A DNA stretch of 64,000 nucleotides from Macrostomum lignano (Eukaryota), in NCBI GenBank assembly GCA_002269645.1, contig NIVC01000376.1, forward strand, positions 558,001 to 622,000, written 5' to 3'. The translations under genes were made by a program, and so were the position numbers. This document shows positions 13,741 to 61,436 of this stretch, in pieces; positions within the stretch are counted from its first letter, which is position 1; the number at the start of each line of letters is the position of its first letter. Under the pieces are notes generated by a model, which searched no databases, was not told where the DNA came from, and saw only the letters and a program-made list of their open reading frames with translations.

Positions 13741-14319
13741 ACCGCATTAATAAAAAATCTAAGAGCAAAAAGTAGACTAAGAGCTGAAGTGGTCTCATTG
13801 ACTAATTCTCATATAAAAATCAATCATTTCGGATTAGGTTATCTAACGTGCGCCTTTATACTGTAATACGCTATAATCCCCCCGATACAGTGTGAGCAAT
13901 ATAGAATATGAAACAAAGAAGACAGACACATCAAGGATGCACAGCTCTGAGAGCGATTGCCAGATTATAGAAAAAAATCAAAGGATTACGCAGAAACGGT
14001 CTGTCATAAAAGAATGGTAATTAATAATTGATAATTTAACTGGGTTGAAAAATCTCTACTTGCACGCAAGGTTAGGCTTAAGACGATAAAAAAGTATTGC
14101 TTTAAGTTTAGCAAGCTGAGTACACCAAAAGAGTTTTAATTGGCTAGTTGGGGAATCGCAGTAATCATTCGCAAATTCTAAGCTAGAATACAGTTCGAAA
14201 ATGAATTTAATTTCAAAGACGGGAGACAGGTAGAGAGTGCAGAGAGGAGGAGCGGATAGTCACGGGAAGAGAGGAGATGAGGTGAATGAAGGTTGGACAC
14301 ACGGGGAGGGAGGAGAGAC

Positions 14320-15452
14320 TCGGGTAGAGAGGAGAGTAGAGGCGGAGAGTCACGGGGAGAGAGAAGAGGAGGGCGGAGAGTCACGGGGAGAGAGAAGAGG
14401 AGGGCGGAGAGTCACGGGGAGAGAGGAGAGTAGGGGCGGAGAGACATGGGGAGAGAAGAGAGGAGGGCGGAGAGACACGGGGAGAGAGGAGAGGAGGGCG
14501 GAGAGTCACGGGGAGAGAGGAGAGTAGGGGCGGAGAGACATGGGGAGAGAGGAGAGGAGGGCGGAGAGTCACGAGGAGAGAGGAGAGGAGGGCGGAGAGT
14601 CACGGGGAGAGAGAAGAGGAGGGCGGAGAGACACGGGGAGAGAAGAGAGGAGGGCGGAGAGACACGGGGAGAGAGGAGAGGAGGGCGGAGAGTCACGGGG
14701 AGAGAGGAGAGTAGGGGCGGAGAGACATGGGGAGAGAAGAGAGGAGGGCGGAGAGACACGGGGAGAGAGGAGAGGAGGGCGGAGAGTCACGGGGAGAGAG
14801 GAGAGTAGGGGCGGAGAGACATGGGGAGAGAGGAGAGGAGGGCGGAGAGTCACGAGGAGAGAGGAGAGGAGGGCGGAGAGTCACGGGGAGAGAGAAGAGG
14901 AGGGCGGAGAGACACGGGGAGAGAGAAGAGGAGGGCGGAGAGTCACGGGGAGAGAGGAGAGTAGGGGCGGAGAGACATGGGGAGAGAAGAGAGGAGGGCG
15001 GAGAGACACGGGGAGAGAGGAGAGGAGGGCGGAGAGTCACGGGGAGAGAGGAGAGTAGGGCGGAGAGACATGGGGAGAGAGGAGAGGAGGGCGGAGAGTC
15101 ACGAGGAGAGAGGAGAGGAGGGCGGAGAGTCACGGGGAGAGAGAAGAGGAGGGCGGAGAGACACGGGGAGAGAGAAGAGGAGGGCGGAGAGTCACGGGGA
15201 GAGAGGAGAGGAGGGCGGCGGAGAGTCACGGGGAGAGAGGAGAGGAGGGCGGCGGAGAGTCACGGGGAGAGAGGAGAGGAGGGCGGAGAGTCACGGGGAG
15301 AGAGGAGAGGAGGGCGGAGAGTCACGGGGAGAGAGAAGAGGAGGGCGGAGAGTCACGGGGAGAGAGGAGAGGAGGGCGGAGAGTCACGGGGAGAGAGAAG
15401 AGGAGGGCGGAGAGTCACGGGGAGAGAGGAGAGGAGGGCGGAGAGTCACGGG
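14320..15452 (+). repeat. ~31-bp purine-rich minisatellite (GGAGAGTCACGGGGAGAGAGGAGAGGAGGGC)n with ~188-bp higher-order period
   Basis: Variant order recurs at ~187-188-nt offsets (repeated ORF starts at 14381/14569 and 14540/14727). Confidence 0.95.
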
Positions 15453-15462
15453 AAGAGTCAAG

Positions 15463-16688
15463 TCAAGCGAGCGGAGGCAGATTCTGCAGCGGTGCGCTAC
15501 TGGCTCCACATCGCGCCCGCTGCTCGACCGCTTGGCCACGGACCCCTGCAACCGCTTCCACTGCGCCACATTCGTTGTCCGCCCTGCTAACAGATTCAGC
15601 ACTGCCGGATACCAATAGAAGACGCGATTGGGCGCTTCCTTGACGTCGATCTAAGTTTTGATGTTGTAGTTGATGCTGTTGTTGATGTTGTTGTTGTTGT
15701 TGATGCTGTTGTTGATTTTGTTGTTGTTGTTGATGCTGTTGTTGATGCTGTTGTTGATGTTGATGCTGTTGTTGATGCTGTTGTTGATGTTGTTGTTGTT
15801 GTTGATGCTGTTGTTGATTTTGTTGTTGTTGTTGATGCTGTTGTTGATGCTGTTGTTGATGTTGTTGTTGTAGTTGATGCTGTTGTTGATGTTGTTGTTG
15901 TTGTTGATGCTGTTGTTGATTTTGTTGTTGTTGTTGATGCTGTTGTTGATGCTGTTGTTGATGTTGTTGTTGTTGTTGATATTGTTGATGCTGTTGTTGT
16001 TGTTGTTGATGCTGTTGTTGATGTTGTTGTTGTTGCTGTTGTTGTTGTTGATACTGTTGTTGATGTTGTTGATGCTGTTGTTGATGTTGTTGTTGTTGCT
16101 GTTGTTGTTGTTGATACTGTTGTTGATGTTGTTGATGCTGTTGTTGTTGTTGATGTTGATTTTGTTGTTGCTGCTGCTGCTTGTGCGGCCGCCGTCTGTC
16201 CAGAGCCCTCATCCCTGTGCCGATGATCGGTATGAACGGCCGGATGCGGCCAGCGCTTTCCACGACTCTCGCCGTTGCTAAGGGCGACGACGATGAGGCG
16301 GCATCAGCCGGGGGAGGCTGCGGTTTTCGCTGATGCCTCGCGGCAAAACCGTAGGTGAATTCGTTGAAGCTGCAGGTTTTGTTTGCGGGTAAAGGCGCTA
16401 AACAGAAACAGTTATTCGATTTAAATAAAAAGTTTCGCAACACCCTACTTATAACCAACAAAACAGTAGTGCGTATTGATTTTAGCTATAATTTTTAGTA
16501 TATGGAAACTATTATATAAAACCAAAAGCTACCTATATTACTAACCGTTCGTAGGTAGCTGGAGCTTCTAAGACTGAGCCGCTGTGGCTTGAGACCTCGG
16601 ATGGCTTCTGCTGCAGCTGGTCGGATGCGGCTGCCACGCTGGAAGCAAAGTTTTCGTGTCAGCGATAGATCCATCTATCTATCTATCC

Positions 16689-16958: not shown

Positions 16959-17452
16959 TTAACTCATATTAATCATTCAGTCTCTCACCGCATCTGAGCT
17001 CGATCTCCAATGGCATTTAGAGCAGCCAGCCTGTCAATCAAACCTGCCGGTTTCACCTGGCTCATAGCAACTGATGCAGCTGCGGATGCTGGCCCAGTGT
17101 TTCCATGGCGACCCACTCGCCGTTCGTAGCTGCACTCTAAGGTGTAGCTGCTCAGGTAACATCTGCCTTCAGCATCTGCTGCAATGGACGACAGGCCGGT
17201 GACTTCCAGCAGAGGAGCAGCTGAGCTGGTCTGCATCCTGTCTCTTCGAGTTCTCTTCTGGCTTTGCAGTTGCTGCTGCAGTCTGTGCTCCCTGCACCTC
17301 ACAGCCGATAGAAACGACTCGTACAACAAGCCACCACTTGTCAGCGGTGGCTTTCCTGCCTCTTCCTCTAGAAGAAGGATCAGCTGATCGAAAGAGTTTG
17401 AGCTGATAGGAAACTGGCCGCAGTTGAGCATTGCTGCGCTTTGCTGGTCCAT
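15463..17452 (-). CDS. Uncharacterised three-exon protein with a very long poly-Q/H tract
   Basis: Exons 17452-16989, 16638-16546 and 16369-15463 join in frame through GT-AG phase-2 junctions (ATGCG|gtgaga, ttccag|C, GAACG|gttagt, ctgcag|C). Start codon uncertain; the ORF is open upstream to 17758. No family recognised. Confidence 0.6.
15660..16180 (-). repeat. (CAA/CAT/CAG)n triplet tract, ~170 codons
   Basis: Read directly as (TTG/ATG/CTG)n on the + strand. Confidence 0.97.
16666..16958 (+). repeat. (ATCT)n microsatellite, intronic
   Basis: Read directly; lies inside predicted intron 16639-16988. Confidence 0.97.
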
Positions 17453-17906
17453 GCGCCACCTAGCTGCTCTCACCTCTGTTGCCAGGCCAAATTCAACTTG
17501 AGGCAATAAGCCGGAGTTTCTCCCTTCTCTTAGGCCTGAATTTCTTTGTTTCTCGCCCCTCTCCCCTGAGAGAGGCAGAGGGAGGGGGTTGGGGAGGGGT
17601 GGGGGCCCGCGGGCGGCAGGCGCGGTGCGTACATCGCCTTCAATTCTCACCCATTTAGCCTGTACAAAATCGCCATGCAAACCCGGGTAGTAGTTAATTG
17701 CAGACTTACATGTATAAGCGTTCTCACTGCCAGCTAAAGCTTGCTTCATTGAACGCAAATAGGGCTAAAATGTTGTGAAAATTAAAAAAATAATTGAGTA
17801 GTATGGTGAAGACAGGGCTTGCTGGTGTTAGATAGCCAAAAAGAAGCTTTGTTGTCAGAATCAATGCTCTCTTTTTACTTGAAATATTTTTGGTGTTCCT
17901 TCCTTC

Positions 17907-17958
<52 letters not shown>

Positions 17959-18027
17959 TTTGCTCCTATCCCATCTTTCCATTACTTTCTGAATCCCCTT
18001 GAGATAATGATTGCACTTAATTTTTAT

Positions 18028-18350
18028 TGACCACGCCGGTAAAAACGGCTTGGCATAGCAGTGTCAAACTGGCATATGCAGCGATAGTCTATGGCCAGGC
18101 CTGCTGACCACGCCGGTATAAACGGCTTTGTACAGCAGTGTCAAACTGGCATATGCAGCGATAGTCTATGGCCAGGCCTGCTGACCACGCCGGTATAAAC
18201 GGCTTTGTACAGCAGTGTCAAACTGGCATATGCAGCGATAGTCTATGGCCAGGCCTGCTGACCACGCCGGTATAAACGGCTTTGTACAGCAGTGTCAAAC
18301 TGGCATATGCAGCGATAGTCTATGGTCAGGCCTGCTAACAACACCGGTAA
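18028..18350 (+). repeat. 77-bp tandem repeat, ~4.2 copies
   Basis: GTGTCAAACT recurs at 18061, 18138, 18215 and 18292. A partial dispersed copy lies at ~61980-62030. Confidence 0.95.
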
Positions 18351-18956
18351 GAAATGCTTAAATTAAATTGCTGTCCAAGCCAAATTTTAATGTACGACAT
18401 ATAGCAAAGCTAAAAAATAAAAATTTGAAATTTGGACTTTACGTACAATTAAAACAAATAGGCTTGGCCAAAAGAGTTTTCCATTTATTTAATTAAAAAA
18501 CAGCTCTTACAGCAGCCCTATACGCGTAATCACAATCAGACGCATCGGAGCCATTGCAATTAAAATTCAATTGGCTAATGAAAACTGGGCGACATCATTA
18601 GCAAAAGTTATCCTTTCAAAAGACTGCACCATTCATTCGAACGGGTTGTTGACTCACTAGAGTTGTTTGTTTGATTTTCTGCTACTAAAAAGCATCAAAA
18701 ACAATCCTTGTGCTTTTCCTACGGTCAGGAAAATGATCCTCGCCGAGTCGTTTCGTCAAATGACAGCTGTTGCGCTGCTGTCATTAAGAACAAACTGATA
18801 GCCTATTTAATTGTTGCTGGATACGAACTACTTTACGCTCAATTTTTCGACTTTGAACTTTATCATACGACGTGCAAAGAACGTATTGTAAATTTTCAAG
18901 CGCTTCAAGAAGGCTGCAATCAATAGCATTCTTTAGTTCAGAATGCATTTCTTACG

Positions 18957-20104
18957 TCACTGGAACGGATTGACGCACTCGCACAGAGCTGTCGCGATGC
19001 CCGAATACGTGTTGGTTACGTCATCGATACCAGTCACGTGACTACTCCAGATGTTGGTCTTATTGTAGTTATCGCCGTGGTTTGGTTGTCCGGGCAGCCA
19101 CACCTCGGGCAGGAAGCTCGAGTTGCAGCCGTGCCAGAACCAGGTGCCGCTAGCGAAACTGCCGACCCGGTAGCCGCCGACGAAATACGAAGCGCCCGAG
19201 TTCGCATTGGTTTTGATCCAGTGCAGGTGGTCCACTTCGGCCCGGTCGATTCCGTCGGCGAACTTCGTGAGGCCGAGCTCGGCCTGGCAGATGGAGAGTC
19301 CGGTGGACCAGCTGGGAGCCGTGATCAGCCTGGGGTGGTGGGTTTGCGATCCTCCATCATTCTCAGATTGCATTCTCATCTACATTCGCATCCGCATCCG
19401 CATCCACATCCGCATCCGCATCCGGATCCGCATCCGCATACGCATCCGCATCCGCATCCGCATCCGCATCCGCATCCGCATTCGCATCCGCATCCGCATC
19501 CGCATCCGCATCCGCATCCGCATCCACATCCACATCCGCATCCGCATCCGCATCTATATCCGCATTCGCATCTCCTCTACACACTTGAGTGCTTATTATA
19601 ATCGTTTTATTCATTACACATCACGAGCTCGAAAAATGCCCATCTCTCACGCATTGCATTGCCATACTAAAACACAATTGAGTCTTCACAGCCGCGAGAC
19701 TCTGAGCCCGCATACCTGTACGTGGAGCTGAAATGCCGGTTGCCGTAGCCGTCCGGACACACCCGTCCGTCGGACAGTCCGGCCAGGCGTCGAACGAAGG
19801 CCCAGCCGAACTGGCTGCAGCTGTCCAGGTTGGCTCGGTGGCTGCAACTGTCGAACTCGAAGGTCCGACACTGGCCGGAGTCGGGCTCCAGACGGAAGGC
19901 TCGGCAGCGAGGCGAGCGGCTGCAAGCGCTGGCGCAAGCGACTTTTAGGTAAGGCGTCACTCCATCGGGTGCTCGGACGAACTCCGGCCGCAGGCAGAGG
20001 CGGATGTAGGCGTAAGCAAAGTTGCTCGTGACGTCTGAGGACTGTTGATGTACATTCGTAGCTTGTAGCCACAGCAGCAGCGCAATCAACGAGATTGATC
20101 TCAT
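18957..20104 (-). CDS. Secreted PAN/Apple-like + C-type lectin domain protein (copy 1, intact, 253 aa)
   Basis: Exon 1 20104-19716 encodes a signal-like leader, the PAN-like motif [14 protein letters not shown]...C, and CPDGY...STYR. Exon 2 19329-18957 encodes LITAPSW...C...YFVGG...WFW...WLPGQPN...LCEC. Splice TACAG|gtatgc...ccccag|G is in frame (389+373=762 nt). Confidence 0.85.
19385..19570 (-). repeat. (GCGGAT)n hexamer in the intron of lectin copy 1
   Basis: Read directly; the same motif occurs at 26553-26715. Confidence 0.95.
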
Positions 20105-20894
20105 TCTAGAAGTTTAGTTTAAGTCTGCCAGTCTCAATTGAAGTTTTGAGCATACAACGTCTTTAATACAAATTGCTATTAAGTAAATTAAAGCAGGCAT
20201 AGGGGTTGCTCAGCTACGGATGGCAATTATTTTAAACGAATCAGTTTGGACAGCCATCGCAAGCAAAACCTGTTAGTTTTTCTGTTGCTTTTCGAGGCTT
20301 TTAATACTGTTAAACTGATAAAGAGGGATTTAATTGCACAACCGAATTCCAATTTCACTAATTGCACTCATTCAAAACCAGATACTCGACATCTGACGAC
20401 AAGTCTAAAATGGCTTTTTCAGAATTTCTCCAGAAGCTAACGAATGCGAGCGTATAAACCTTTTCATTCTTTGGAACCCTAAAACACTTTATTGAACGTA
20501 TTATTTTGAACGATACGCAATCGAATTGAGGTGTCAATCGAGTAAATCGATTGACAGTTGATAAGGCTTTCCAAACTTCTCCAAATAATGGAGTCAAAAG
20601 CACTGGAGTTCAAGTCTCGACGAGTCATTGAAGTTCTCGACACCAACTCAAAGATGTAGATTTATCTGATATGTGCACTCAAAAGCCTAATTGGTTTTTA
20701 ATGGCTAAGCGCACACGCTTGGACTGGATATCATTTGAGTGACATACAATAGGAGCCATTGTAGGGTTGTAGAAAGGTAGAAAGTACCTTTTTTCGAAGT
20801 TGGGGTTTTTCACCTATGTACACCTGCAAACCAGTGTTTAATTAAAAACTCTAACTCCCTCTGTTTCCAATCTATGCGCTAATGATATACGAGC

Positions 20895-21270
20895 GTGAGG
20901 CCATCTCAATTGTTCCTGCTACTTCTTTCAGGTAGGCAGCTTCAAGCTTTAGCCAGCCGAAAGAAAGATTCGGACCTATACAGATTCGCTTACATCTGCA
21001 ATGTGACTTCGGCCCGAGTTTATCACACAGCGCGAGGAAGTTTCGCTTGGCAACAGAATTGAATACACTGCACCTTGCAGCTAGTCGGTTCGCTGCCAGG
21101 CCTTCCAGCTGCAGCCGGGCTCTGGCAGCTGCTGGACCTTCAAGTTCGACAGGTGCAGCCACCGAGTCAACCTGGACAACTGCAGCCGTTTTGATTGGGC
21201 GTTCGTGCGAGGCTTTTTGGGAGTGCGGAGTGGCAGGCTTTGTAGATTTCAAGCCTATGCATTTGAATCA
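20895..21270 (+). pseudogene. Diverged PAN-only paralogue (copy 3), head-to-head with copy 1
   Basis: GTG in place of the start, leader RPSQLFLLLLSG...YRFAYI, a frameshift, then LRPEF...CS*SVRCQAFQLQPGSGSCWTFKFDRCSHRVNLDNCSRFDWAFVRG with an in-frame TAG. No lectin exon follows. Confidence 0.75.
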
Positions 21271-21349
21271 TAAATTTTATCCAGTGATATTTATTGACCC
21301 AATGATGTCAACGCATCAGTAAAGGGCGTAAAGTACATTATACTGTCTA

Positions 21350-22500
21350 TACATGCTGTATATTCGTGGGCAACTGGGGGATCAGTTGCACCACTGGTTT
21401 GCTACAGAGTTGGTTTGGACCTCGCAAACAGGCGAGAGCCAGTCACTCAGGCGCCGAATGTCACACTGGCAGAGTACCAGCTTCTGGGGGTCAAGACTTC
21501 CAGATTGCGTCTTGGTGAATCCAGCTTCTGGGGCCGAGGCCTGACCATGGTGGTCCACTTACCAGCTCCCTTCACGGGTAGGTTCACCTAGCGCAATGTC
21601 AGCTCAAAGCAGCTCACCAGCGATACAAGATCATCAGCTAGAAGCCTCAGGCTGCACCACAACCCTCTGATCCGAGTACGCCTTCGGTGTCATAAGAGAT
21701 CTCGTCAGAGACCGTCTTTTTGGCTTCACTCGTGACTTACTGCACTCAAGCTCTTAAGCGCTAAAAATAAACAATACGGTTGATTCCTACACGCTTCCTC
21801 TTCGTCAAAGCTCTTCGATTCGGTCCTCAGCTGGATAGCCGGCTTCAATACCTGTGCATTGACGATGTTGACTGAGACGTACTGTCTCACTACGAAAACC
21901 CAGTGCGAATGCGTGGTGAAGAGTTTCAGAGTGGTGATCAGTCACTCGAAAACTCCCACTTCCAGACCCTAAGCCTGGGAACAGAATTCAGTGATCACTT
22001 ACTAATGCGGGCTCCTCTTCTTTGTCTCGTGGGTCCTTAGAACTCTTCTCTTGTCTCCGGAGTAGTCTTCTTGGGTCCTAACGGTATTGATTTCCCCCAG
22101 AGATGTATCTATAGCCTCGTTTAGCTGCTCCAACAAGCTTAAGATCTTTGGAGGCTGCTCCGAGTCAGAGATTTTAGCTATGATTTTGGCTTGTGATGAG
22201 GACGCACTTTTTCCCAAATCCCGCGCTAGCACATGGGCTCGAAACTTACTAGCCTACTAACAGTGGGCGATGGGCATTTTTATCCTTTTTCTGCAAATTG
22301 TCATAGAATCTATACTAGATATAATGTCTGGCCATACTAGTAGTCATAATAACATAGGCGCAGCTTTTTGGGTCGTAAATCATCGCTTCCGAAGTTGGTC
22401 TGACAGCCACCTGCGCCTCACTCAGTGTTGAGACGGGCGCCAGATGGTCTGAGAGGATGCGGGCGGTAGCTTTTTTCTCATCATTTTGACAGGCCATCAA
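21350..22500 (-). mobile_element. Heavily decayed non-LTR retrotransposon ORF2 fragments
   Basis: Broken - strand frames resemble LINE ORF2 linker and RT C-terminal sequence. Many stops. Similarity judged by eye. Confidence 0.35.
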
Positions 22501-22756
22501 GATTTATGAGGTCAGAGCCTATTGTTCGGATTCACTCAAGCGTGTGACAGCTTTGACAGCTATGCGTTTTACCCCTAAAAGTACTTTGGGATTAGCGATT
22601 AGCAATTTCTCTTCATTATCTTCACTTTCTATTTAATAAGAGCTTTCTAATGTATATTTTTTCATTAATTTCTGTCAATCCTACGCGAAAAGTCATAAAT
22701 CATTTTGTTGCGATTTTGAGTGATTTATGGCCGCACCTGTCATCTTTTTACGACCC

Positions 22757-23404
22757 TGTGGGAACCGATAGGATCTCTCGGTCACGTGATTCTGGGTAGC
22801 AACAAGCTTAGCCAATCAGAAAATTCGGCGCTCATTTTAACAAAACGGCTCAGCCAATCAGAATCGACGTGTTCCGTTATAACAAACTGCGGTCCAGTTG
22901 GCGGCTATTTAAACCGGAGTTTTTGGCCCGCTCGGACTAACTCTTGCTCGGGTCCAGCACGCAACTTCTGGTTCCCGGAGCGCGACCGTCGTTTCTTGAT
23001 CCCCGGATTGCGACTTCCCCCATCATCATCAAGGACGAATCCCCCGGTCGTCAGCAGCGAACATCAAGCGAAGATCATCACCTGCTAGCTATTAGCGAAG
23101 ATTGTGTCAGCATCATCCCGAGTCTACAGCTGCGAAGCATCAAGCCGATTCGGTCACTGTGGATTTCCTGGTCTCCGGCTGTTGAGTTTCTGATTGGTTG
23201 GGTGAGAGGCTACCTAGACTTGCTTGATTGGGTGATCCCCTATCTGTTCCCTGTTTCAGTAGCTGAATTAGGCGCACACTTTTGCTCATTTTGTTCAGTA
23301 GTGCTGTTACTGAGGCAGAAATCACTTAATAATACTACTAGTAGTCTGAAACTCCAATTCAATCTGAGGTGTGAAGTGATCTAAGGAGAAGGTTAAATCT
23401 AACA
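22757..23404 (+). mobile_element. Possible solo-LTR-like or promoter-bearing repeat
   Basis: Begins TG and ends CA. Two GCCAATCAGA boxes followed by CTATTTAAA. No matching TSD found. Confidence 0.3.
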
Positions 23405-23449
23405 GTTATTTTTATCGGTTTTATTTCTTTGTTCGCCGATGGCTCAGAT

Positions 23450-24110
23450 GAGTGGCTAAGCTAGTAGGCGCCGGTCACAGTGGACCAATGGCCAGGCAGT
23501 CCCCAGTCGATCAATCAATCAAATCAGTGAGCAAAACTGCCAGAAGTGCAGAATCGGCGCCAGAGATGTACTTTGTGCACTCTAGGTTAGCCAAGCGGCT
23601 CGGGTAATGAATCATGCAAGGTCTCTGAAGTTCGAGTTAGTCTATCATCAGCGCTATGAGAGGCTAGTTGGCGCGTTGAAGGCCAAAAGTACATGTCTTC
23701 GTATTTAGCAATGTAATAGTACATGTAGCTACCCCATAGACTCGCCACTGCAAGAATCCCCTGCACAAGTCCCCTCTGTACCTGCATGGCCAATGCGATC
23801 TAGTCCCAGCAGTGTCCCTTATCATCGGCTATGACTTCGAGATTGACAGCAAAAAGACACTAGTTGGCAGGTAAGTGCAAAGCCCCTTCTAGTCGGAAGC
23901 CCGATTTCGAGAGTCCCGGTGTGGTGAGCCAGGACGCACGGGCTGGTGGCAGCGAGTTAGCTTAGTCTGCGGATTAGCTAATTTCTACCTTCAAAATTCT
24001 CCCTGCTTGTCTCTCGCTGTCCCTCTCTTAGCTATAGGACCTAGACTGCTCGCCACACGATCAAGCTACCATGGGGCTGACCATCTGACAGGAGTGGGGG
24101 GCCAGGACTC
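23450..24110 (-). mobile_element. Decayed non-LTR RT fragment
   Basis: VQRGLVQG...LWGSYM resembles the RT GxPQGSxLxPxLFxxYM motif. Confidence 0.4.
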
Positions 24111-25074
24111 TAATTGATTTATTTCTGAGACCTGAGGCCCGAAGGCTTCGTCACAAGGGGCCTGAAAGGTGGAAACCCATCACTTGTATTAATATTTATA
24201 GGAAAATCTTGCAAGAATCTGGTTATTTTTGATTAGGTGACTTAGTTTCGCTTTTTGGAAATTTGACCCTTTGAAAATTGAATAGAATTTTTGCGAATAC
24301 AATAGCTTTCGAACATCAATTACCATATTCGATGTTCTAAATTTAAATGTTGCAAAATAATCATTCGTTGTTTACGCGGTACTATAAATAGAGTGTGACT
24401 ACTTGGAATCTTTAGATTTTGAGTTTTGTGCATTTTTATCTTACTACTTCTAGTAGTTTGCTTTATATTGTATTTTGGAGATCTCTACAGTGGATCCATT
24501 CCAGGGACTAGTTAGGGCTTAACAGATTTCGTGATGACCTTTCTAAGTATCGTTTATTAAATGAAGTGAATGAAATTTAAAAGTCTCAAAGTGACAAACT
24601 TAAAAATGGGTTTTGTGACTGCAAAAGCAAATTTTAACAGTAGTGATAAACAGCAATTCTTCAAAACAAAAGTTTAAAACTTCGGATGCAGAAAACGCTT
24701 TTGACTCCAAAATGTAGTATGTGACGAGAATTAGTTTTCAATTTTCAAATCAAGAGTTTGCTCTGTGGGATACTGAAGCCATCAAACATCAAAAAGACTT
24801 TTATTGTTTCACCATCAAACATTGGATTGATGATGGTGATTTGTGAAGATAAATGATGATTATTACGAGCCGCCGACTTATGAATATTCAACGGATATTC
24901 AACCACCAACTCTTTATGAATGTTAAATGAATACTGAAAGAAATTCACCCCATTGCTAGTTCAGAACTTTTTTAAATAGACCTATTTATGAGATCAGTGA
25001 AAGAGGAAAACAAAACTAACCTTACAACATTTGCAATTGCATGATCTCTTGTTTACTTGACAGAATTTGACTTA

Positions 25075-25737
<663 letters not shown>

Positions 25738-25949
25738 ACATTATATTTCATTTCATTATATTACATTATATTTCACATTATTCGACAATGTAAAAGCGAT
25801 AATTCGGTATGTTTTTTCGACGAGCCAATGAAGTTTTCTGTCTATGAAAGCAACCTAGTATGTATCTATCCATGACAAAGGAGAGTTCCAGACCGTTTCA
25901 CCAATCACCACGCGCACATTGTCTGTAGAACATTCGATTCACTCTCCTG

Positions 25950-25993
25950 TCCAATAGGAGCATACCGCTGAGCAGATCCCCAGTCCATATAAA
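25950..25993 (+). promoter_or_regulatory. Candidate CCAAT and TATA promoter of lectin copy 2
   Basis: CCAAT at ~25950 and TATAAA at 25988-25993, ~64 nt before the ATG at 26057. Confidence 0.4.
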
Positions 25994-26056
25994 GTGCCAA
26001 ATTTGCAGGTGTAATTTGGTTCAATTACAATTTGTCAATGAAATTTAAAATAGAGA

Positions 26057-27132
26057 ATGCAAGAAAAAATTTACATTGTTTTGCTTGTCCTGCAAGCAGC
26101 CAGTGTGCAGATGCAGGAATCATATTTGATGGAAACTTTCAAGCTAACTCTTGTCCGCCTCTGCCTGCGGCCGGAGTTCGTCCGAGCTCCCCTAGGAGTG
26201 ACGCCTTACCTAAAAGTCGCTTGCGCCAGCGCTTGCAGCCGCTCGCCTCGCTGCCGAGCCTTCCGTCTGGAGCCCGACTCCGGCCAGTGTTGGACCTTCG
26301 AGTTCGACAGCTGCAGCCACCGAGCCAACCTGGACAGCTGCAGCCAGTTCGACGTCTGGCCGGACTGTCCGACGGACGGGTGTGTCCGGACGGCTACGGC
26401 AACCGGCATTTCAGCTCCACGTACAGGTATGCGGGCTCAGAGTCTCGCGGCTATGAGCACTCAAATGTGTTTTAGATTGCCAATCCATCATGCCGAGCTT
26501 ATGAGGCGTTAAGGTAAGAATGAGATCATAAAAAGCATATAGGTGTTCAAAGCCGGATGCGGATGCGGATGCGGATGCGGATGCGGATGCGGATGCGGAT
26601 GCGGATGCGGATGCGGATGCAGATGCGGATGCGGATGCGGATGCGGATGCGGATGCGGATGCGGATGCGGATGCGGATGCGGATGCGGATGCGGACGCGG
26701 ATGCGGATGCGGATGAGAATGCCAACGCATGATGGAGGATCGCAAACCCACCACCCTAGGCTGATCCCGGCTCCCAGCTGGTCCACCGGACTCTCCATCT
26801 GCCAGGCCGAGCTCGGCCTCACGAAGTTCGCCGACGGAATCGACCGGGCCGAAGTGGACCACCTGCACTGGATCAAAACCAACGCGAACTCGGGCGCTTC
26901 GTATTTCGTCGGCGGCCACCGGGTCGGCAGTTTCGCCAGCGGCACCTGGTTCTGGCACCGCTGCAACTCGAGCTTCCTGCCCGAGGTTTGGCTGCCCGGA
27001 CAGCCGAACCACGGCGATAACTACGATAAGACCAACATCTGGAGTAGTCACGTGACTGGTATCGATGACGTATCGAACACGTATCCGGGCATCACAACGG
27101 CTCTGTGCGAGTGCGTCAATCCGTTCGAGTGA
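26057..27132 (+). pseudogene. PAN + C-type lectin gene copy 2, frameshifted (pseudogene or PAN-only product)
   Basis: Inverted paralogue of copy 1 at ~96% identity over the mature region. Exon 1 26057-26426, exon 2 26760-27132. A 16-nt deletion (GGCTGGGCCTTCGTTC) at ~26350 shifts the frame, so the spliced message stops at the first full codon of exon 2. Confidence 0.8.
26553..26715 (+). repeat. (GCGGAT)n hexamer in the intron of lectin copy 2
   Basis: Read directly. Confidence 0.95.
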
Positions 27133-29007
27133 CGACAGAATTGCGACTGATAGCAAGCGGCCTCTTGAATACTTCAAATTAAAATTTTTAATTCAATGAA
27201 ATCAGGCAAAATTAGGCTAAAATAGATTGAAGTGACTTCTCCACAGTCATCACACAAGATACAATGGCTTTTCCACGATCATGACAATAGCAAGAGAATG
27301 CAATCCAGGAAGACAGTAAAATATACTAGCATAAAAAAGTTGTTTAATGCACGAAAATAATCAAAGTTTTTATGTTTTGCCTAGCAACAAGCCAAAGAAG
27401 AAACTATAGAATTTGAAAAAAAGAAGAAATAAGAATGGAAACAATGGACGAATGCATCATAAATTTGAAGGAAATGAATCGACTAATGCAGATTAATAGA
27501 AAGTGAAAAAAGATTTGACAAATTCATCCTGTCTCGTAAACAGTTTTTTTCACTGCGTATTTTTACTTGAGTAATCTTCAAATGATAGAAACGGACTCTA
27601 ATTTATAAAATATTAGAAATTAGAGTACGATTAAAACGCATTATGTGCATTATTTTTATTGACGTAGTTGGTTTAGTTGGTAGGTTAAAATGGTTTAGTT
27701 AGTTAAAGTATAATTCACGTGAAATTGGTTAGCTACTAGAGATTAAACGGTTGTTACCCGATTTCATCTACTGTTAGCAGTAGTATACAACGAGCTTACT
27801 GCAGGTCTTTCTGTAGCTTGTCGGTGACAATCGGCTGTAAGGTTTCGTCGAGTTTAGAATTAGAATAGGAAAGTTTGATATTTAAAAGATACTATATATT
27901 TATCCGCATATTCGCATATTTAAATGATGAAATTATACACAGCCCATTTATACTCGTTTTCAATAGCCTGTTTTGGTGAAAAAATTAATTCTATGAAATC
28001 TGTCTGATGTATCTCAATGCGTTCGCTGAAGTCTAATATTCATAGTAGCTTAAAATGTCTGACTGATTTCTTGATGTACAAACTGCCTTTTCAGCTATTT
28101 TGAGTAGACTGTTACGCCAAAAAGAATGGGAATTCAAAATTTACAGAGATTATCATAGCTTCTAGCCTAAAAGTACTCCAGGACATGAGAAACATCGTGT
28201 TGGCTGAGTGAGTACGGCGGAGTATTTTGTTTGGTAGGAAGTCTTGGAGTTTCTGTAGCTTATATGTTATGAGGAAGTAGCGATAAAAGACGCGAGATAA
28301 ATATAAATCTGTAATACTAAATAGTATCTCCCGTTTGCAACAGATTCTGCTAACAGATATGATTTATTCATTGGAAAATGCTATTAATTTAGTGTACTAT
28401 ATTTAGTATATGTGGATTTTACTGAGCTCAGGAGCCAGCTGACATCCTGCTACGCTCGTATTGCAAGACGATTGCAGGCTTGCGATAAAGAACTATGTAC
28501 GTACAGGATATCGGCTGTTGAATTTGGAAGCACGTCAGAACGTATCAACAAAATTGGAAAAAAAGTTACTATAGCTATTACAAAGAGATAAGCTAATCCT
28601 GAGTTGGCAAAAAAGCATTTTGTTTAACTTTCCATCGCATTTTTCTCAACGATTCCCCATCATTGAAGCTGAAGCAATTTAGTTAATCAGGACTTTGTGC
28701 AAAATAGGATCCTCGCCCTCGCGTCTGACCCTCGCGTCAAAGTTCCTTCGTGGATTCGATTCTGAGAGCTACCAATTTCATTTGGGATTCATGCTCATAA
28801 TAGCCATCCCCCAAGACGCAGATTATGTACATATGCTTATACGATGAGATAGTCGGCCCGCTGTACATATGTGCCTGTGTGTGCTCAGAGGTCGACTGTG
28901 TTCGAAGTCCTGCTGCAAACAGCTCAAAACATATTCTGCTGCAATTTTGCATTAGATTAAGTCATTCGTAAAACATTTAGTATTTCAAAGAAGTCATTGG
29001 TAGCCTT

Positions 29008-30057: not shown

Positions 30058-30924
30058 CTCGCGTCCATCTTGTTTTGTCTCTTACCAAAAGAAAACCAAC
30101 TGTTCAAGTCGGCCTCCATTAAGAGCTCGCCCGGCCAACCATGGTACTCTATAGTTCGAGCATTGTTGACTTAGCTCAAGCTCTTGTTCAGTTTTTCTTT
30201 TGAGCGAATAAATGGCATTCAAAAGAAGTGCTGAGGCTGTGTCAATAGAGGCTGTTCTGACGAGGTTTTGTCATTCAGTACCTATAAATAACAAAGGTCT
30301 AATCTTGATAACTACACACCGCAAGCGTTTCGTCATTCAAATTTATTTTTCTTTCAATAGTTGATATGGAAAATCACACTTTTTGTCGGATTTGCACAGA
30401 AGACAGACAGTGTAGGTCAGCAGTTTTTGATGAAATATCGTCACAGCCTCACAGTAATTGATCGGCGCAGTTCAGACTAGAAAAAAGTAGCTATCGATGA
30501 GACACACAGGCCAACTGCCCAATATAGATTTAGCTTCTCTCATTAAACAGCCGGTCTATTTTTACCGAAAGGGAATAATTGTGTCGGTGAAACACAACAC
30601 CCTTTGTTAGTCAGCTGACAGCTCGATAATGTGGGGTATTGAGTTCAGTCCAGAGCTTGATTAACGGGCTATGACCGAAAATATCAGTGGCTTCGAATTG
30701 ATTTATCCTTGTTCTGCGACCAAACTCTACGAAAAGCAGAAAAACGTCTTATTTACATTTTCAACCAAAATCACTTTTAGAAAAAGTGCACCAAGGATGG
30801 AAACTGTAGGTTGTGACTTTGAGGACACGGCAACAGGGGACTTCTGATTTTTGACCCTTATGTGCGCTCTTAGCTCTAGAATTAAATAGACATCAGACAC
30901 AGTATTCAGACCTAAGGACGGATG

Positions 30925-31280
<356 letters not shown>

Positions 31281-31859
31281 GGAGTGCACTCTGAACTGGA
31301 TTATTCGATCCGTAGTCAAGCGCAGTTCATCCGATCCTATTTTTTCTTCACTTTCTCAAACATTTCCCTTTCGCATCTCTCTACTTCTTCGTCTGCAGGG
31401 ATCTCCTCCCCAAATCCTGGGCGATTTAATGAGTACCGCGACCCACCGGCTTTGAATACCCTCGGACTTCTCATCCCATCCCTTACCTAAGTACTCGGAT
31501 TTCGAGATCAGTTGTCATGGACAACCGTTAAATGATCCCTTGAGCACCTGCCCTGCCCTGCTCATCCGCATAGGACTGAGAACAGCTGTCTCTGTGCGAT
31601 CGCATTTCTGACCTTCTTTAGCAATCGAATCTGGGTCTCAAGGAGAATGACAGTTTCCCAGGGCCGAAGTGGACGAGATTTTTTGTCAAAAGTCTTCCTT
31701 GTAGCGATGGTAGTCTACTTTGAAGCTATTGTGACAATTTATAGCCTTACATTCCATAGATTAGAAGTCTACAGATTTTGGGTTATGATGTAAATTAAGA
31801 TCTTTTATTATTTAAAATCGATTTTTATATTATAATAAAGTCTATGGATAACAGCCTAT

Positions 31860-38822: not shown

Positions 38823-47741
<8,919 letters not shown>

Positions 47742-50982: not shown

Positions 50983-51348
50983 GGAAGCAGTAAAAACTTG
51001 AGTTGGTCTAACTCCAGATCATACAGTTTTAGATCGCCTTGGCCTATCCAATCGGACTTGACAGCTCAAGCTGCAATATTTCTAACGGGACATAACTTCA
51101 CGCAGCTCAGTGAGCCTCCATTTGAACCGGCAGCAGCAGCGCTGGGAACAGTTCCCAGTTCCGCCCCGGCATCGCGCCTCTTCCGGCAACCTGAGCCCCC
51201 CCCCCCCTGAAGCTGAGGAGCCACTTCAGTCCGTCTCAGATTGCAGCTAAGCATAATCCGTTCCAATCAATAATTGATTTCCGCTGGTGCGCTAAGCACG
51301 CACGCTCTATCTATCTACTGAGATTCTCTGCTATTTAAACAAGCAATT

Positions 51349-51684
51349 ATGTCGAGAGAGGACGGCGAAGACGGCTTGAAAGCATTCCACATCTACGCGG
51401 TGGGCGAACGGGATGCCATGTCGGTCAACATGCGGAACGCCGGTCTGGAGTCGCTCAACGAGAAGTACCTGGCCCACCTGCGCAACACGATGCGGCGGGA
51501 GGTCAGCCTCATCAGCATGGACCAGCGCAGCGTGCTGAATAAGTTCAACACCTACAGCATGACCATGGTGGAGGACAGTCTGGCGCCCAGCAGCAGGGAC
51601 CGACGGACCTATCTGCAGTTTCTGAAGGAGCGGCAGCAGCAGAGCCGGACAAGTCAGGGCGACGATGGGTTCGGACCGCCGGTG

Positions 51685-51777
<93 letters not shown>

Positions 51778-52248
51778 GGTGCCCCACACCGCCCACAGGA
51801 CCCGATGTCCCGGTCTCGCACCTTCATCGACAGCCAGCGCCGGTCGGCCACCGCGGACGCCTCGGCCAGCCTGGCCCGGCTCCGCCTACTTACCCGGCCA
51901 TCACGCCAGGCCTCGCACTGTCCGCGCCTGGCCGCGGCCCAGGTTGCCCGGGTGCACCCGGAGTTCGCACCCAGCCTGGACCGGTCCAACCGGGCCCGCA
52001 CCGCGCCGACGCCGCAGACGCTGCTGAGGATGCACCAACAGCGCCTGGAGCAGCTGGACGCCGCCGATCCGGAACAGCAACAGCAGCAGCGGCTTCGGCG
52101 AATTCATTCAACGCTCGGCTTCTCGGTGCACGACGCCAGGTCGAGGCGGAGGGCGCTTAACGACGAGCGATTCTTGAAGCTGCGCGAAGCTCTACAGAAG
52201 GTGCCGCCGCAGTCTGGGTCCGATACGCTGCGACAGGAGGATCTGTGA
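51349..52248 (+). CDS. Uncharacterised coiled-coil protein (299 aa if unspliced) with an internal (QTDR)n from a (GACA)n tract
   Basis: Intact GC-rich ORF with an N-terminal helical segment (SLNEKYLAHLRNTMRREVSLISMDQRSV) and C-terminal ALNDERFLKLREAL. Loosely reminiscent of CCDC190-type proteins; unverified. Confidence 0.75.
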
Positions 52249-53391: not shown

Positions 53392-54941
53392 CTAAAGCTG
53401 CGTGCTGACCAGAACTCTCCTGGACGCAGATCGGCACCGGTCAAAGGCAGCGGTCGCAATGTTGTTGTTCGGCGCGGCCGTGGCTCGCTGCTGTGGCGTC
53501 GTCGGTCTCAGACAGCCGACAAGTTGCCTGCGGAAGGCCGGACTGCGATAGGCCAGCAGCAGCCAGTTAGCGCACAGCTGGCAGACGATGACAGTCTCGC
53601 AGAAGTGGCACAGATGCGCCATCAGCTTCAGCATATTCGGCTCCGTAGCTGGATTGGCTTCCATGGCTTCTACAAGGGTTACAACAGCGAGGCAGGGCAG
53701 CGAACTGGCTAGGAGGGCTCCGGACAAGGCTAGGCACAGTGTGCAGCTTCTCAGGCTGCCGTTCAGAGCCACAGGCGACACCGAGGTGCCTATGATTCTG
53801 GATTCGGAGCCTAGCTCGGCGGCGAGCCTTTGACGACGGTGCTGCCGAATGTGGAGCACCCGGCGCAGCAGGGCCGCATTGGCCGCCAGGATGACCAACA
53901 CGATCGCGGCCGGAGGGAAGTTCAAGCCAAAGCCCAGCAGGAGGTTCAGAGCCCTGCTAGGCGAGTTGGCTGTCTTCGAGCAGGCGATTCGTCCCGCCAC
54001 CGTTGACCAGCCAGCCCTGATCGGCGCGTGCGTTGCTATGGCAACAGTTGTTAAGCTGACGTAGCAGCAGACTCGAACGGCGGCGCGTCGGCCTCGAGTG
54101 TAAAGTTGAAAGGGCCGGTGCATGGCCAGGACCCGATCGCAGCACATGGCGGCGAACAAGGCGTAGGCGGTCAGGCTGGTCCAGGCCTGCAGGAACTGGT
54201 CCACGCGGCAGGCCAAGTCGGAAGCGTTCCCAACGATCCAACCGGCCGAGCCGTTGGTGAGCCAGGGCAGGCCGCAGGGCAGGAGGAAGTGAAACACGCC
54301 GAACACGACGCCGACTGAGCAGTTTGCGGCGGAGATGGCGCTGAGGTAGACAATCTGGCGGGACCTGCGCAGGCGGTAGTTAAACGGCTTTCTTGAGCTA
54401 CTCTGGTCTGGTAAACACATTTCTTTGATCGAGAGTTCTTGAAATGGAAATATACGAGTAATTTTGATAAGAAGATGCAAATAACCTACACTAGGATTGT
54501 GTTATTAAGACAATCGGAGTACAAACGGATCGAATGTTGTGTCGATTGCCTCTCACAAACAGACAGAAGAAAATGGTAAATGCACTAAAGGAGGAAACTT
54601 CATTGACTTGTGAAGGGCCATTCTTGATGACATCACTGAGCACACCCTCCTTACTAGACATCTCAACAGGTTGATGCAAATAGACTACCAGCAGAACTTT
54701 CTAACCTAGAATCCTTCACGACTCTAACCAGCAGCAGTCTGGTTGCTAGCGCGTTGCCAGGCAGGCCAAGGAGCAGAAAGCAGATCAGAGGAACGCCGGT
54801 CAGGGTGCCCAGAGCAGATACAGCCACGCAGAGCATTCGCCCGCTGCTGCTCGATACGGAAGAGTCGCAGTCTCTTAACAGCGATTGAAGCGTTCTCAGA
54901 AATCTGCCACCGGACTCAGCACTGTTACTCGAATCGTTCAT
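53392..54941 (-). CDS. Rhodopsin-like (class A) GPCR, paralogue A, two exons, ~407 aa
   Basis: Exon 1 54941-54729 encodes TM1 (LLGLPGNAL); exon 2 is 54402-53392; junction is phase 0 GT-AG. Seven hydrophobic segments, TM3 AMCCDRVLAM (DRY-equivalent), and Cys at the start of TM3 and in ECL2. Confidence 0.88.
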
Positions 54942-59035: not shown

Positions 59036-61436
59036 ATGGACAAACTAGGCAACAACCTGACGTCAACCGGCGGAGATGAGGCGGTCCAGGTGTTCAGCCA
59101 GACTCTTATTTCTGCTTTGGAAATCTGCTGGACTGGCGGGGACTCCGCTTCCCGCCGCCTCCTGTGCGCTCTGGCCTCAGTACTCGGCATTCTTTCGGGC
59201 ATCCCGACACTCGTTGTCGTGCTGATTGGAGCGCCCGGCAACGCCCTGTCTGCCTGGCTGCTGCTCCGTCGAGCTCGCGCCAAGGAGCGCCGGACGCGCC
59301 AGAGCGTCTACCTGGGCGCCGCGTCGGCCGCGAACTGCGGCGCGGTGCTGAGCTACGGGCTGCTACAGTTCTTCCTGCCCTACGGCCTGCCGTGGCTCAG
59401 CGGCGGCTCAGCCGGTCTGATTATCGGCGACGTGTCCGATGCTGCCTGTCGGACAGTCAGCTTCCTGATGGCCTGGCTGATCCTGCTGGCATATGGGCTG
59501 CTCACCGCAATGGCGTGCGACAGAGCGTTGGCCATGTGGCGCCCGTTCCGCAGTCAGCGGCTCGGTAATGACGCTTGGGAAACTGCTCCAGCTGAGCTAT
59601 GTGGTTCTTTAGAATGGGTTGCTCGGGGATAAGTGCTGTGTACTTGGTTCTAAATGAGTTTAATTGGTCCTTCATGCTGTTTACCTGGTCCTTCATGTTG
59701 TTTACTTGGTCCTTCATGTTGTTTACTTGGCTCTACATGAGTTTACTTGGTTCTACATGAGTTTATTTGGTTCTACATGAGTTTACTTGGCTCTACATGA
59801 GTTTACTTGGTCTTTCATGTTGTTTACTTGGCTCTACATGAGTTTACTTGGTCTTTCATGTTGTTTACTTGGTCCTTCATGTTGTTTACTTGGCTCTACA
59901 TGAGTTTACTTGGCTCTACATGAGTTTACTTGGCTCTATATGAGTTTACTTGGTTCTAAATGAGTTTACTTGGTCCTATTGTTTGACAACTCAGCCATTG
60001 GGTTATGAAGTTATGAAGCTTGCGTGATGTGTCAGGGACTTAAGCAAACGTTTGAGCAAACGGAAACAGCTCATTCAAATTCTTTTTTGGCGGAGGGCTG
60101 GAATCGATTGAGACTGTCAGAACTGTCAGACTGTCAGAATGTCAAACATGGGTAAAAAGGCGCTTTTGATTCTCTTTCAACTGAATCTGTCCACTACAGA
60201 AACTTTATGCATTCAAACTGCAGACTATAAATTAATTTCAAAGGCTGCCGTCACTGTTAATCAGTTTACAGCTGTTCCATCGAAATCAAATCCTCGGAGA
60301 CATACTGTATATGTGATTGAATACAATGATTCGAGAGAATACAGTCATCAGGTTCCGCCGTCATTATTGGACTTTAGTTGTCCATGGTTCCAGTCCAGTT
60401 TTAGGTCTTTTTTCCTGAGGCGTTTGAACTTTAACTGTATACTGTGAAAGCTACCATCGAATTTTATGCGTCTACAAATCCGTATATTGGAGAGTTTCAG
60501 AGCACCTACGCAGACAATATGTTGGTTCGGGAAGTTGTTATGCAGGAAGTTTTTGATCTGCAAACAGACTTTATTGGCTTCGGCATCATTTTACAGAAAA
60601 ACGGTCTAAAATGTAAATTATGTTTTCATTTTTACGAAAATTGACTGTCAGACATTTGACTGTCACAATTTGGCTGCACAAGTTCAAAATTAGTCAAAAC
60701 ATCGGCAGTCAAATAGCTGATAAAGATGTATCCCTTGTTTCTGGAGTTCCTTTTGAAGAATAAAAAATCAGAAAATGCCGCTTAAAAAGTGTCATTGAAT
60801 GCTCACCTACCAGGTCGCGGATCGGCCATCCAAGTGAGCTCGTTGATCTCCCTGGCAACCGGAATCGTGGCCAGCTACGCCCTCGCTGTGACTCGCTGGA
60901 CCAGTAGCAAGGCGACATCCTGCTCAAAGAATCCGTTCGAATCAGCTGTCCCAGCCGGCTTCAATGTCTTCTATGGCATCTGGCTCGGCTTCCCACCGGC
61001 GCTGCTGGTGCTGAGCATATTGGCCGCCAACGCCACCCTCCTGGCTCGAGTAGTGCGGGTTCGCCGGATTCGCCAGCAGCTGGTGGCCACAAATCGGCCG
61101 GGTCAACAGAGTCAGGCGCGTTGCCGAGTCAGGATGCTGGGCGACAGCAGCATCCGGAGCAGCATGCTCTGTCTGGCCGTCTCTAGTGCCTCGCTGGCCA
61201 CATCGCTACCGTGCGTCGCTATGACAACGCTGGCCTACTCACTCAGCCTGTGGCCCAGCGCGGACCCGACTCTGCTGCCTGCCGTTCTGCTGCTCTGCCA
61301 CATCAGCGAGCTGCTGGTTGTGTTCCAGCTGTCAATCAGCTGGATGCTGCTGGCCTGGCGAAGCTCCGAGTTCAGCCGTCGGCTGCTTCGATGCCTGAAA
61401 TGCCAGGTGCCAGCCGGAGCCGGAGCTAGTGCTTAG
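59036..61436 (+). CDS. Rhodopsin-like GPCR, paralogue B, two exons, 383 aa
   Basis: Exon 1 59036-59564 and exon 2 60814-61436 join at CTCG|gtaatg...taccag|GT (phase 1, 1152 nt total). Colinear with paralogue A (PGNAL, RQxVYL, FxLPxGLPWL, CDRxLAM, GxxFPPA, CLAxS, LCH, WxLLAxRS). Confidence 0.9.
59655..59980 (+). repeat. 20-bp intronic minisatellite (TGTTTACTTGGTCCTTCATG / GAGTTTACTTGGCTCTACAT)
   Basis: Two interleaved unit variants inside the GPCR-B intron. Confidence 0.92.

Follow-up and report, generated by a model that had tools for sequence, protein, structure and literature searches.

The 64,000-nt window of Macrostomum lignano DNA analysed here (assembly GCA_002269645.1, contig NIVC01000376.1, positions 558,001 to 622,000, forward strand; coordinates below count from the first letter of this whole stretch) carries two inverted copies of a gene that combines a PAN/apple module with a C-type lectin-like domain (CTLD), together with the relic of a third copy. 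An earlier reading made from the letters alone (hereafter the sequence-only reading) had described the pair as a near-identical mature cassette behind unrelated leaders, had offered gene conversion or the duplication of a cassette under a new leader as explanations, and had proposed a diversifying secreted recognition system.

Genes at the locus

Both copies are predicted to be two-exon genes encoding a signal peptide, a PAN/apple domain and a CTLD (Table 1). Exon 1 of copy 1 accounts for the signal peptide with an N-terminal strand (codons 1–34, the diverged part), the PAN/apple domain, a linker and the start of the CTLD with its CPDGY motif, and exon 2 contributes the QPN and GIDD motifs and the C-terminal LCECVNPFQ. 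The spliced open reading frame (ORF) of copy 1 is intact and comprises 253 aa. The profile hidden Markov model (HMM) of the family is matched without a break across the splice, and the splice model therefore loses nothing.

The relic is a decayed exon 1 that lies between copies 1 and 2, ~0.8 kb upstream of the copy 1 ATG. Its leader is still recognisable (VRPSQLFLLLLS...FAYI), and its PAN region and linker share 78% nucleotide identity with each of copies 1 and 2. Six-frame searches of the 64-kb window with the family HMM revealed no lectin exon after the relic and no family members beyond the two copies and the relic.

Table 1 Features of the inverted PAN–CTLD gene pair and the relic
Feature	Position	Strand	Remarks
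Copy 1 exon 1	19716..20104	-	ATG at 20104; ends at donor junction CAG|GTATGC; family HMM 1-132
Copy 1 intron	19330..19715	-	Phase 2, GT..AG; (GGATGC)n microsatellite of ~32 units at 19383-19572
Copy 1 exon 2	18957..19329	-	Remainder of CTLD; TGA stop at 18957-18959; family HMM 129-254
16 nt kept in copy 1, absent in copy 2	19796..19811	-	GTTCGGCTGGGCCTTC; encodes part of F-GWAFV-R
Homogenised (putatively converted) tract, copy 1 arm	18945..20004	-	Repeat search, blastn, MAFFT, edge test
Relic of third exon 1 (leader, PAN, linker)	20895..21243	+	GTG for ATG, frameshift, in-frame stops
Copy 2 exon 1	26057..26426	+	ATG at 26057; diverged signal peptide/leader to 26153, then PAN in the ATG frame
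Homogenised (putatively converted) tract, copy 2 arm	26154..27144	+	Repeat search, blastn, MAFFT, edge test
Copy 2 deletion junction	26347..26351	+	Single GTTCG; copy 1 has GTTCG-11 nt-GTTCG
Copy 2 intron	26427..26759	+	GT..AG; (GGATGC)27 microsatellite at 26554-26715
Copy 2 exon 2	26760..27132	+	Remainder of CTLD, open but off the copy 2 ATG frame; TGA at 27130-27132

An inverted repeat with abrupt edges

A repeat search of positions 17000–29000 returned inverted arms at 18945–19360/26729–27144 (416 nt, 95%), 19807–20004/26154–26351 (198 nt, 97%) and 19655–19795/26347–26487 (141 nt, 94%), and many extra inverted pairs that stem from the hexanucleotide microsatellite common to both arms. With the intron counted in, the whole inverted repeat forms a single blastn match of 1062 nt at 87.5%. 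The coding part of the tract differs at 23 of 646 positions (96.4% identity), with 7 mismatches over the 273 nt of exon 1 and 16 over the 373 nt of exon 2, where the frame of copy 2 is 95.7% identical to that of copy 1. The near-identity of the region from PAN to stop is thus as the sequence-only reading had described it, and its count for the lectin exon, eight amino acid changes from about half of the differences, is reproduced exactly (T133P, Y183H, G197R, N219D, T235S, S239P, A242T and Q253E).

In the MAFFT alignment the 5′ edge of identity falls at 20004/26154, with a shared TC just before it and within 2 nt of the boundary proposed earlier (20002/26156). Identity had been said to extend to the stop codon; it reaches the stop codons and continues for another 12 nt to its 3′ edge, but is broken by the 16 nt absent from copy 2. 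The intron joins in at both ends, with 5 mismatches in its first 50 nt and 1 in its last 32 nt, and in between the similarity of the copies is weak but significant (z = 4.25). No similarity exceeding that of shuffled sequences was detected in the 300 nt upstream of the ATGs or in 300 nt of 3′ flank. The earlier statement that nothing outside the cassette aligns consequently stands for the promoters and 3′ flanks, but not for the mid-intron or, as shown below, the leaders. The 5′ edge does not coincide with the start of the fold, since the AlphaFold2 (AF2) model places a strand at residues 29–35, within the diverged part. The inverted repeat and its abrupt edges are real and far beyond chance. 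Silent sites and intron ends are as similar as replacement sites, and the identity of the arms therefore reflects recent shared ancestry rather than constraint.

Four of the seven exon-1 differences fall within 7 nt, at 26186–26193/19972–19965 (GCACCCGAT versus GCTCCCCTA, D47L), which looks like a single multi-nucleotide event and not like independent substitutions. No dispersed repeats or transposons that link the arms and might have mediated a rearrangement were found in the spacer or the flanks.

The leaders are alignable

The leader is 34 aa long in copy 1 and 33 aa long in copy 2, and the distance from the ATG to the edge is 100 versus 97 nt. The protein alignment of the two leaders has 11 of 33 residues identical and a global score (z = 5.3) that none of 5000 shuffles reach, and at the nucleotide level (z = 3.7) the score is reached by one shuffle in 1000. 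The proportion of differences in the leader is 0.78 at synonymous sites (pS), which is saturated, and 0.48 at nonsynonymous sites (pN); in the tract, the synonymous divergence (dS) is 0.080. Judged from these alignments, the leaders are old homologues, collinear and of equal length. The description of the leaders as unrelated is accordingly abandoned, all the more as the relic carries the same kind of leader. Divergence jumps at the edge, from 53 mismatches over 99 codon-aligned leader positions to the 23 over 646 in the tract (Fisher p = 2e-35).

The relic offers a second comparison. Over the PAN region, identity is 97% between copy 1 and copy 2, and 78% between the relic and either of them. 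Over the leader, the three sequences are about equidistant, copy 1 being no nearer to copy 2 than to the relic, and the alignments with the relic are weak.

A 16-nt deletion takes the lectin domain of copy 2 out of frame

Where copy 2 has a single GTTCG, copy 1 reads GTTCG-GCTGGGCCTTC-GTTCG (19796–19811 plus the second GTTCG). The loss of 16 nt in copy 2 is a microhomology-flanked deletion that shifts the lectin domain out of the PAN frame: the PAN part (HMM 6–98) and the linker with CPDGY (HMM 103–133) occupy separate reading frames, and the frame opened by the ATG extends over 123 codons before it meets a stop among the first codons of exon 2. The relic keeps the 16-nt stretch (TTTGATTGGGCGTTCGTGCGAG) and the family conserves the FVRxxPGL that it encodes, so that the deletion in copy 2 is derived and the presence of the 16 nt is taken to be the ancestral state. 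As assembled, copy 2 would yield only the signal peptide and PAN domain, followed by 26 aa of nonsense sequence, and is probably a young pseudogene.

Two ways of rescuing copy 2 were considered and judged to be chance. An upstream ATG at 26038, 19 nt before the copy 2 start and in the lectin frame, opens a full-length spliced ORF of ~254 aa; the sequence is GC-rich, and this frame has no signal peptide and leaves PAN out of frame. Splicing from the GT at 26347 would be in frame to exon 2, but the donor is poor (CCA|GTTCGA) and its use would drop the linker and the CPDGY strand.

Some further frames deserve mention. In copy 2, the (GGATGC)27 array reads as an open (Met-Arg)n frame that continues into the lectin exon (ORF 26557–27132, plus strand, 191 aa), and in copy 1 a stop codon lies between the microsatellite frame and the lectin exon. 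The M. lignano relative P0010 (UniProt A0A1I8FEN3), in which the PAN core is absent, has its CPDGY segment in the shifted frame of copy 2 (RDGCVRMALATAGWA in P0010, against a 14-residue segment of copy 2); this may be an error of the draft assembly, or P0010 may be a further family member that has decayed.

Domain architecture of the encoded protein

The architecture assigned by the sequence-only reading, PAN plus C-type lectin, is supported by profiles, by the AF2 model and by Foldseek. The model computed with the family alignment has a predicted local distance difference test score (pLDDT) of 91.9 and a predicted template-modelling score (pTM) of 0.85; modelling from the single sequence gave a pLDDT of 32 and was unusable. 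The CTLD fold, with two helices, two antiparallel sheets and the long-loop region, is present in the model. A Foldseek search against the PDB gave 217 hits at E<=1e-3, and the top 50 listed all contain a CTLD, mostly as a single domain; the single-CTLD hits among these 50 have a target template-modelling (TM) score of 0.7–0.82, and the matches to CD23, langerin and CEL-I have a target TM of ~0.8 with a root-mean-square deviation of 2.3–3 Å. At the sequence level, the family profile matches 45 solved CTLDs (best 8e-8), Pfam Lectin_C matches 3 of 17 family members (best 2e-8), and phmmer aligns copy 1 with codakine (2VUV; E = 3.6e-4), QPN being aligned to EPN.

With canonical carbohydrate-recognition domains, such as those of codakine, langerin, CD23, CEL-I and mosGCTL-1, the protein has in common the fold, CPxG[WY], the α1 cysteine, a 'WIGL'-like FVGG, and WxW. 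It differs in its N-terminal PAN module, in the absence of the inner disulfide (Cys after 'EN', Cys after 'WND'), in having IDD for WND, and in carrying a CEC pair and an additional cysteine, Cys198, that is conserved. By alignment, the α1 cysteine C144 and a β5 cysteine (C246/C248) are present; of the two canonical CTLD disulfides, the inner pair is retained by relatives P0012 and P0014 but not by the window proteins. The family-specific C198 and the second cysteine of CEC may substitute for it. The family G[IL]DD aligns to the WND of mosGCTL-1, and the QPN and IDD side chains could ligate Ca2+. Copy 1 most likely specifies a secreted Ca2+-dependent glycan-binding protein that uses QPN instead of EPN.

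Support for the PAN/apple assignment is weaker than that for the CTLD, but appears coherent. In the PDB, nearly all of the chains matched by the N-terminal family profile are PAN/apple chains (HGF N-domain 8e-4, EtMIC5 1.2e-3, factor XI, kallikrein). The protein has the C-x3-C...C-x-A-F...C-x-L-F core in common with the PAN/apple modules of the HGF N-domain, factor XI/prekallikrein, Eimeria MIC5 and Toxoplasma MIC4, and in the model a single helix packs on a β-sheet as in such modules; the differences are that the match is marginal (E ~1e-3) and that the module here has seven cysteines. After the leader there are 12 cysteines, 7 in PAN, 1 in CPDGY and 4 in the CTLD. One PAN cysteine is probably paired with the cysteine of CPDGY, and the high pTM together with the even number of cysteines suggests that PAN is held against the CTLD.

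A family of Macrostomum PAN–CTLD proteins

A word-indexed protein search with copy 1 returned no relatives, and these were found only by an exhaustive phmmer scan of 1.84 billion representative proteins, which identified 23 (E from 3e-191 to 1e-13 over residues ~30–252). Identity to the relatives is 29–46%; every source-named one that matches both domains is from Macrostomum lignano, and a few are transcript-like contigs from public sequencing runs. Most are 255–270 aa long with the same layout of signal peptide, PAN and CTLD. Copy 1 belongs with them by full-length collinear similarity, by the common linker and C-terminal motifs, and by the cysteine pattern. The family motifs are an N-terminal F-x3-[FLY]-[IV]-R-L-C, the linker FVRxxPGLxxGxLCPxGY, W-x-W-x2-C, and a C-terminal LCEC(V)SPF(D/Q).

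UniProt holds A0A1I8H3Z5 (P0001), A0A1I8HTM9, A0A1I8H311, A0A267EP21 (PAA63283.1) and A0A267EAK8 (PAA58610.1) among the relatives; their labels are automatic only, for instance 'Apple domain-containing protein' for A0A1I8H3Z5 and 'C-type lectin domain-containing protein' for A0A267EAK8. Intron positions differ from those in the window, the intron of P0011 lying ~12 aa deeper into the CTLD and P0013 having a separate leader exon. The two M. lignano family loci that were retrieved are single genes amid unrelated neighbours, unlike the inverted pair described here. P0001 is a 3072-aa model that joins at least three PAN–CTLD units. Units B and C show 92% identity over the stretch that begins at PAN and ends at KFAD, and 64% in the remaining CTLD, where C is nearer to unit A (71%). 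Segmental exchange may thus be common in the family. Our search of the literature on Macrostomum found no functional study of, or paper on, the PAN–CTLD family. The adhesive protein Mlig-ap1 was considered as a member and rejected, its CTLD lying in an unrelated giant protein.

Selection on the tract

Nei–Gojobori counts on the tract give 11.5 synonymous (Sd) and 10.5 nonsynonymous (Nd) differences, with dS = 0.080, a nonsynonymous divergence (dN) of 0.022 and a ratio of the two (ω) of 0.28. Of all sites, 76% are nonsynonymous, and hence a share of one half for nonsynonymous changes is fewer than expected; replacement changes are below neutral expectation (binomial p = 0.002). This indicates purifying, not diversifying, selection on the tract. 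The value of ω further points to a recent origin of the copy 2 frameshift. Within exon 2, the density of differences rises in the last 60 nt (7/60 versus 9/313; best-split p = 0.007, uncorrected), a segment that runs from the end of the predicted strand 231–234 to the C-terminus and includes the loop 235–240; this clustering is a hint.

Probable gene conversion between old inverted paralogues

We consider it probable that the pair, two old inverted paralogues of the PAN–CTLD family, owes its present form to interlocus gene conversion, after which copy 2 was disabled. The leaders are homologous and collinear, which implies that both loci already held full genes, and their homology at saturated synonymous sites favours conversion between old paralogues over a cassette newly placed behind a foreign leader. 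The lack of signal in promoters and 3′ flanks is what is expected of old neutral DNA. Of the two explanations originally put forward, conversion is therefore the one we prefer, the abrupt change affecting silent sites and intron ends alike between old homologous flanks.

The mechanism and the order of events are what we infer. Old local duplications would have produced three copies of exon 1, arranged with copy 1 (minus strand) and copy 2 (plus strand) diverging in transcription 6 kb apart and the later relic (plus strand) between them, and one of the three would have decayed into that relic. More recently, at a dS of ~0.08, conversion between the inverted paralogues would have overwritten ~1 kb between codon 35 and a point 12 nt beyond the stop, leaving the old leaders, promoters and 3′ flanks untouched. 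The mid-intron could be an older patch or tract, or could reflect fast turnover beside the microsatellite. Following the conversion, copy 2 would have lost its 16 nt by microhomology-mediated deletion, copy 1 staying intact.

Interlocus conversion is known from the arm-to-arm exchange in sex-chromosome palindromes and from many tandem gene families. The locus resembles these systems in its inverted arrangement and in the fall from saturated to ~3% divergence regardless of coding, with flanks untouched. It differs from palindrome conversion in that the tract is ~1 kb with edges inside the gene, there is no large palindrome, and one arm is disabled.

Several observations weigh against this reconstruction. 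Alignment of the two leaders to that of the relic gives weak scores (z = 2.1 and 1.4), the intermediate similarity seen in the mid-intron misfits one simple tract, and the comparison covers three sequences. An ω of 0.28 is hard to reconcile with a copy 2 that is dead, except in the case of a very recent deletion, and the deletion itself could be an assembly error or confined to one allele. On the protein side, Pfam Lectin_C gives no hit to the single copy 1 protein at E<=1, the residues at the Ca2+ site are non-canonical (QPN, IDD) with the inner disulfide absent, and Pfam PAN_1 scores 19.5 bits (E = 9e-4), under its cut-off of 21.4.

Sharp edges, with no detectable similarity of promoter and 3′ flank beyond them, would also follow from a partial inverted duplication in which a 1-kb cassette, from PAN to stop, inserted in frame downstream of a leader and promoter unrelated to it and so gave rise to a chimaeric gene. 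We regard this as improbable. The notion of a cassette under a new leader conflicts with collinear leaders of the same length and significant similarity, with nearly the same spacing from ATG to edge (100 versus 97 nt); the family-wide motif F-x(3)-[FLY]-[IV]-R-L-C straddles the edge, and the relic indicates that entire copies of exon 1, leader included, were duplicated earlier. Conversion is far more likely than the chance arrival of a piece, in frame, behind a leader that is homologous. Inverted duplications are a known type of assembly artefact, and the arms might represent haplotypes or a long-read inverted-duplication artefact. This is very improbable here: the flanks are unique and non-alignable, the leaders are saturated and the microsatellite lengths differ, and the arms are separated by 3.6% substitutions and several indels, whereas artefactual palindromes are near-perfect with flanks included. 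Mis-assembled haplotypes are likewise unlikely given the inverted orientation, the unique flanks and the saturated leader divergence.

Is the locus a diversifying recognition system?

The proposal of a diversifying recognition system envisages a repertoire in which paralogues swap segments, positive selection favours variation of the face that binds sugar, and broken copies donate sequence. Three observations are in its favour, namely the 7 of 16 exon-2 differences in the last 60 nt (p = 0.007, uncorrected), the variability of the EPN/QPN/QPD motif among family members, and the contrast in P0001 between 92% identity of units B and C in the N-terminal part and 64% in the C-terminal half of the CTLD. 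Yet dN/dS is 0.28 and significantly under 1 (p = 0.002), no more than two copies and a relic are present in the window, copy 2 being frameshifted, and both M. lignano family loci examined are singletons amid unrelated genes. We accord this repertoire little probability and conclude that the locus is a case of ordinary gene-family evolution, not a diversifying recognition system. A broader form of the idea, in which flatworm-specific PAN–CTLD lectins repeatedly exchange segments and disabled paralogues act as donors to yield mosaic binding domains, strikes us as quite improbable; the mosaicism of units B and C and the clustering at the 3′ end are compatible with pseudogene donors without showing them.

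The Biomphalaria FREPs are a diversified invertebrate lectin repertoire. The proteins described here are like them in being secreted lectin-domain proteins with an extra N-terminal domain, lineage-specific expansion and recombination among paralogues. Unlike the case of the FREPs, the present evidence gives no large local repertoire, positive selection or immune role.

The direct importance of the locus is small, and it has no bearing on a long-standing open question. It does provide a clean example of a putative conversion tract with edges inside an exon, and the frameshift in copy 2 matters in practice, because an automatic annotator would probably give two intact lectins or a wrong model. 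It also draws attention to a PAN–CTLD family whose two-domain relatives, among those found by the phmmer scan, occur only in Macrostomum, and which could be of interest with regard to mucus, adhesion, reproduction or immunity.

Surroundings of the gene pair

The window is eukaryotic in character and rich in simple repeats, with genes for rhodopsin-type G-protein-coupled receptors (GPCRs) and a leucine-rich repeat exon nearby; no Rfam or tRNA genes were found in it. GPCR frames (Pfam 7tm_1) lie at 53392–54480 (minus strand) and at 59036–59632 and 60789–61436 (both plus strand), and the two plus-strand ORFs look like halves of one paralogue of the minus-strand gene, that is, another local family pair. 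Just past the 3′ end of copy 1, a 77-bp tandem repeat occupies 18028–18349 (4.2 copies, 96% matches), and a 48-nt stretch of its unit recurs at 61978–62025 (87.5%). Positions 14001–16500 contain purine-rich tandem repeats with an extreme GC skew of 0.60, adjoined by a long poly-glutamine ORF (15463–16461, minus strand). Long (CTGT)n/(CAGA)n microsatellites are found at 25075–25736, 30922–31455, 42162–42683 and 51331–51789, one of them occupying 660 nt of the spacer immediately before copy 2.

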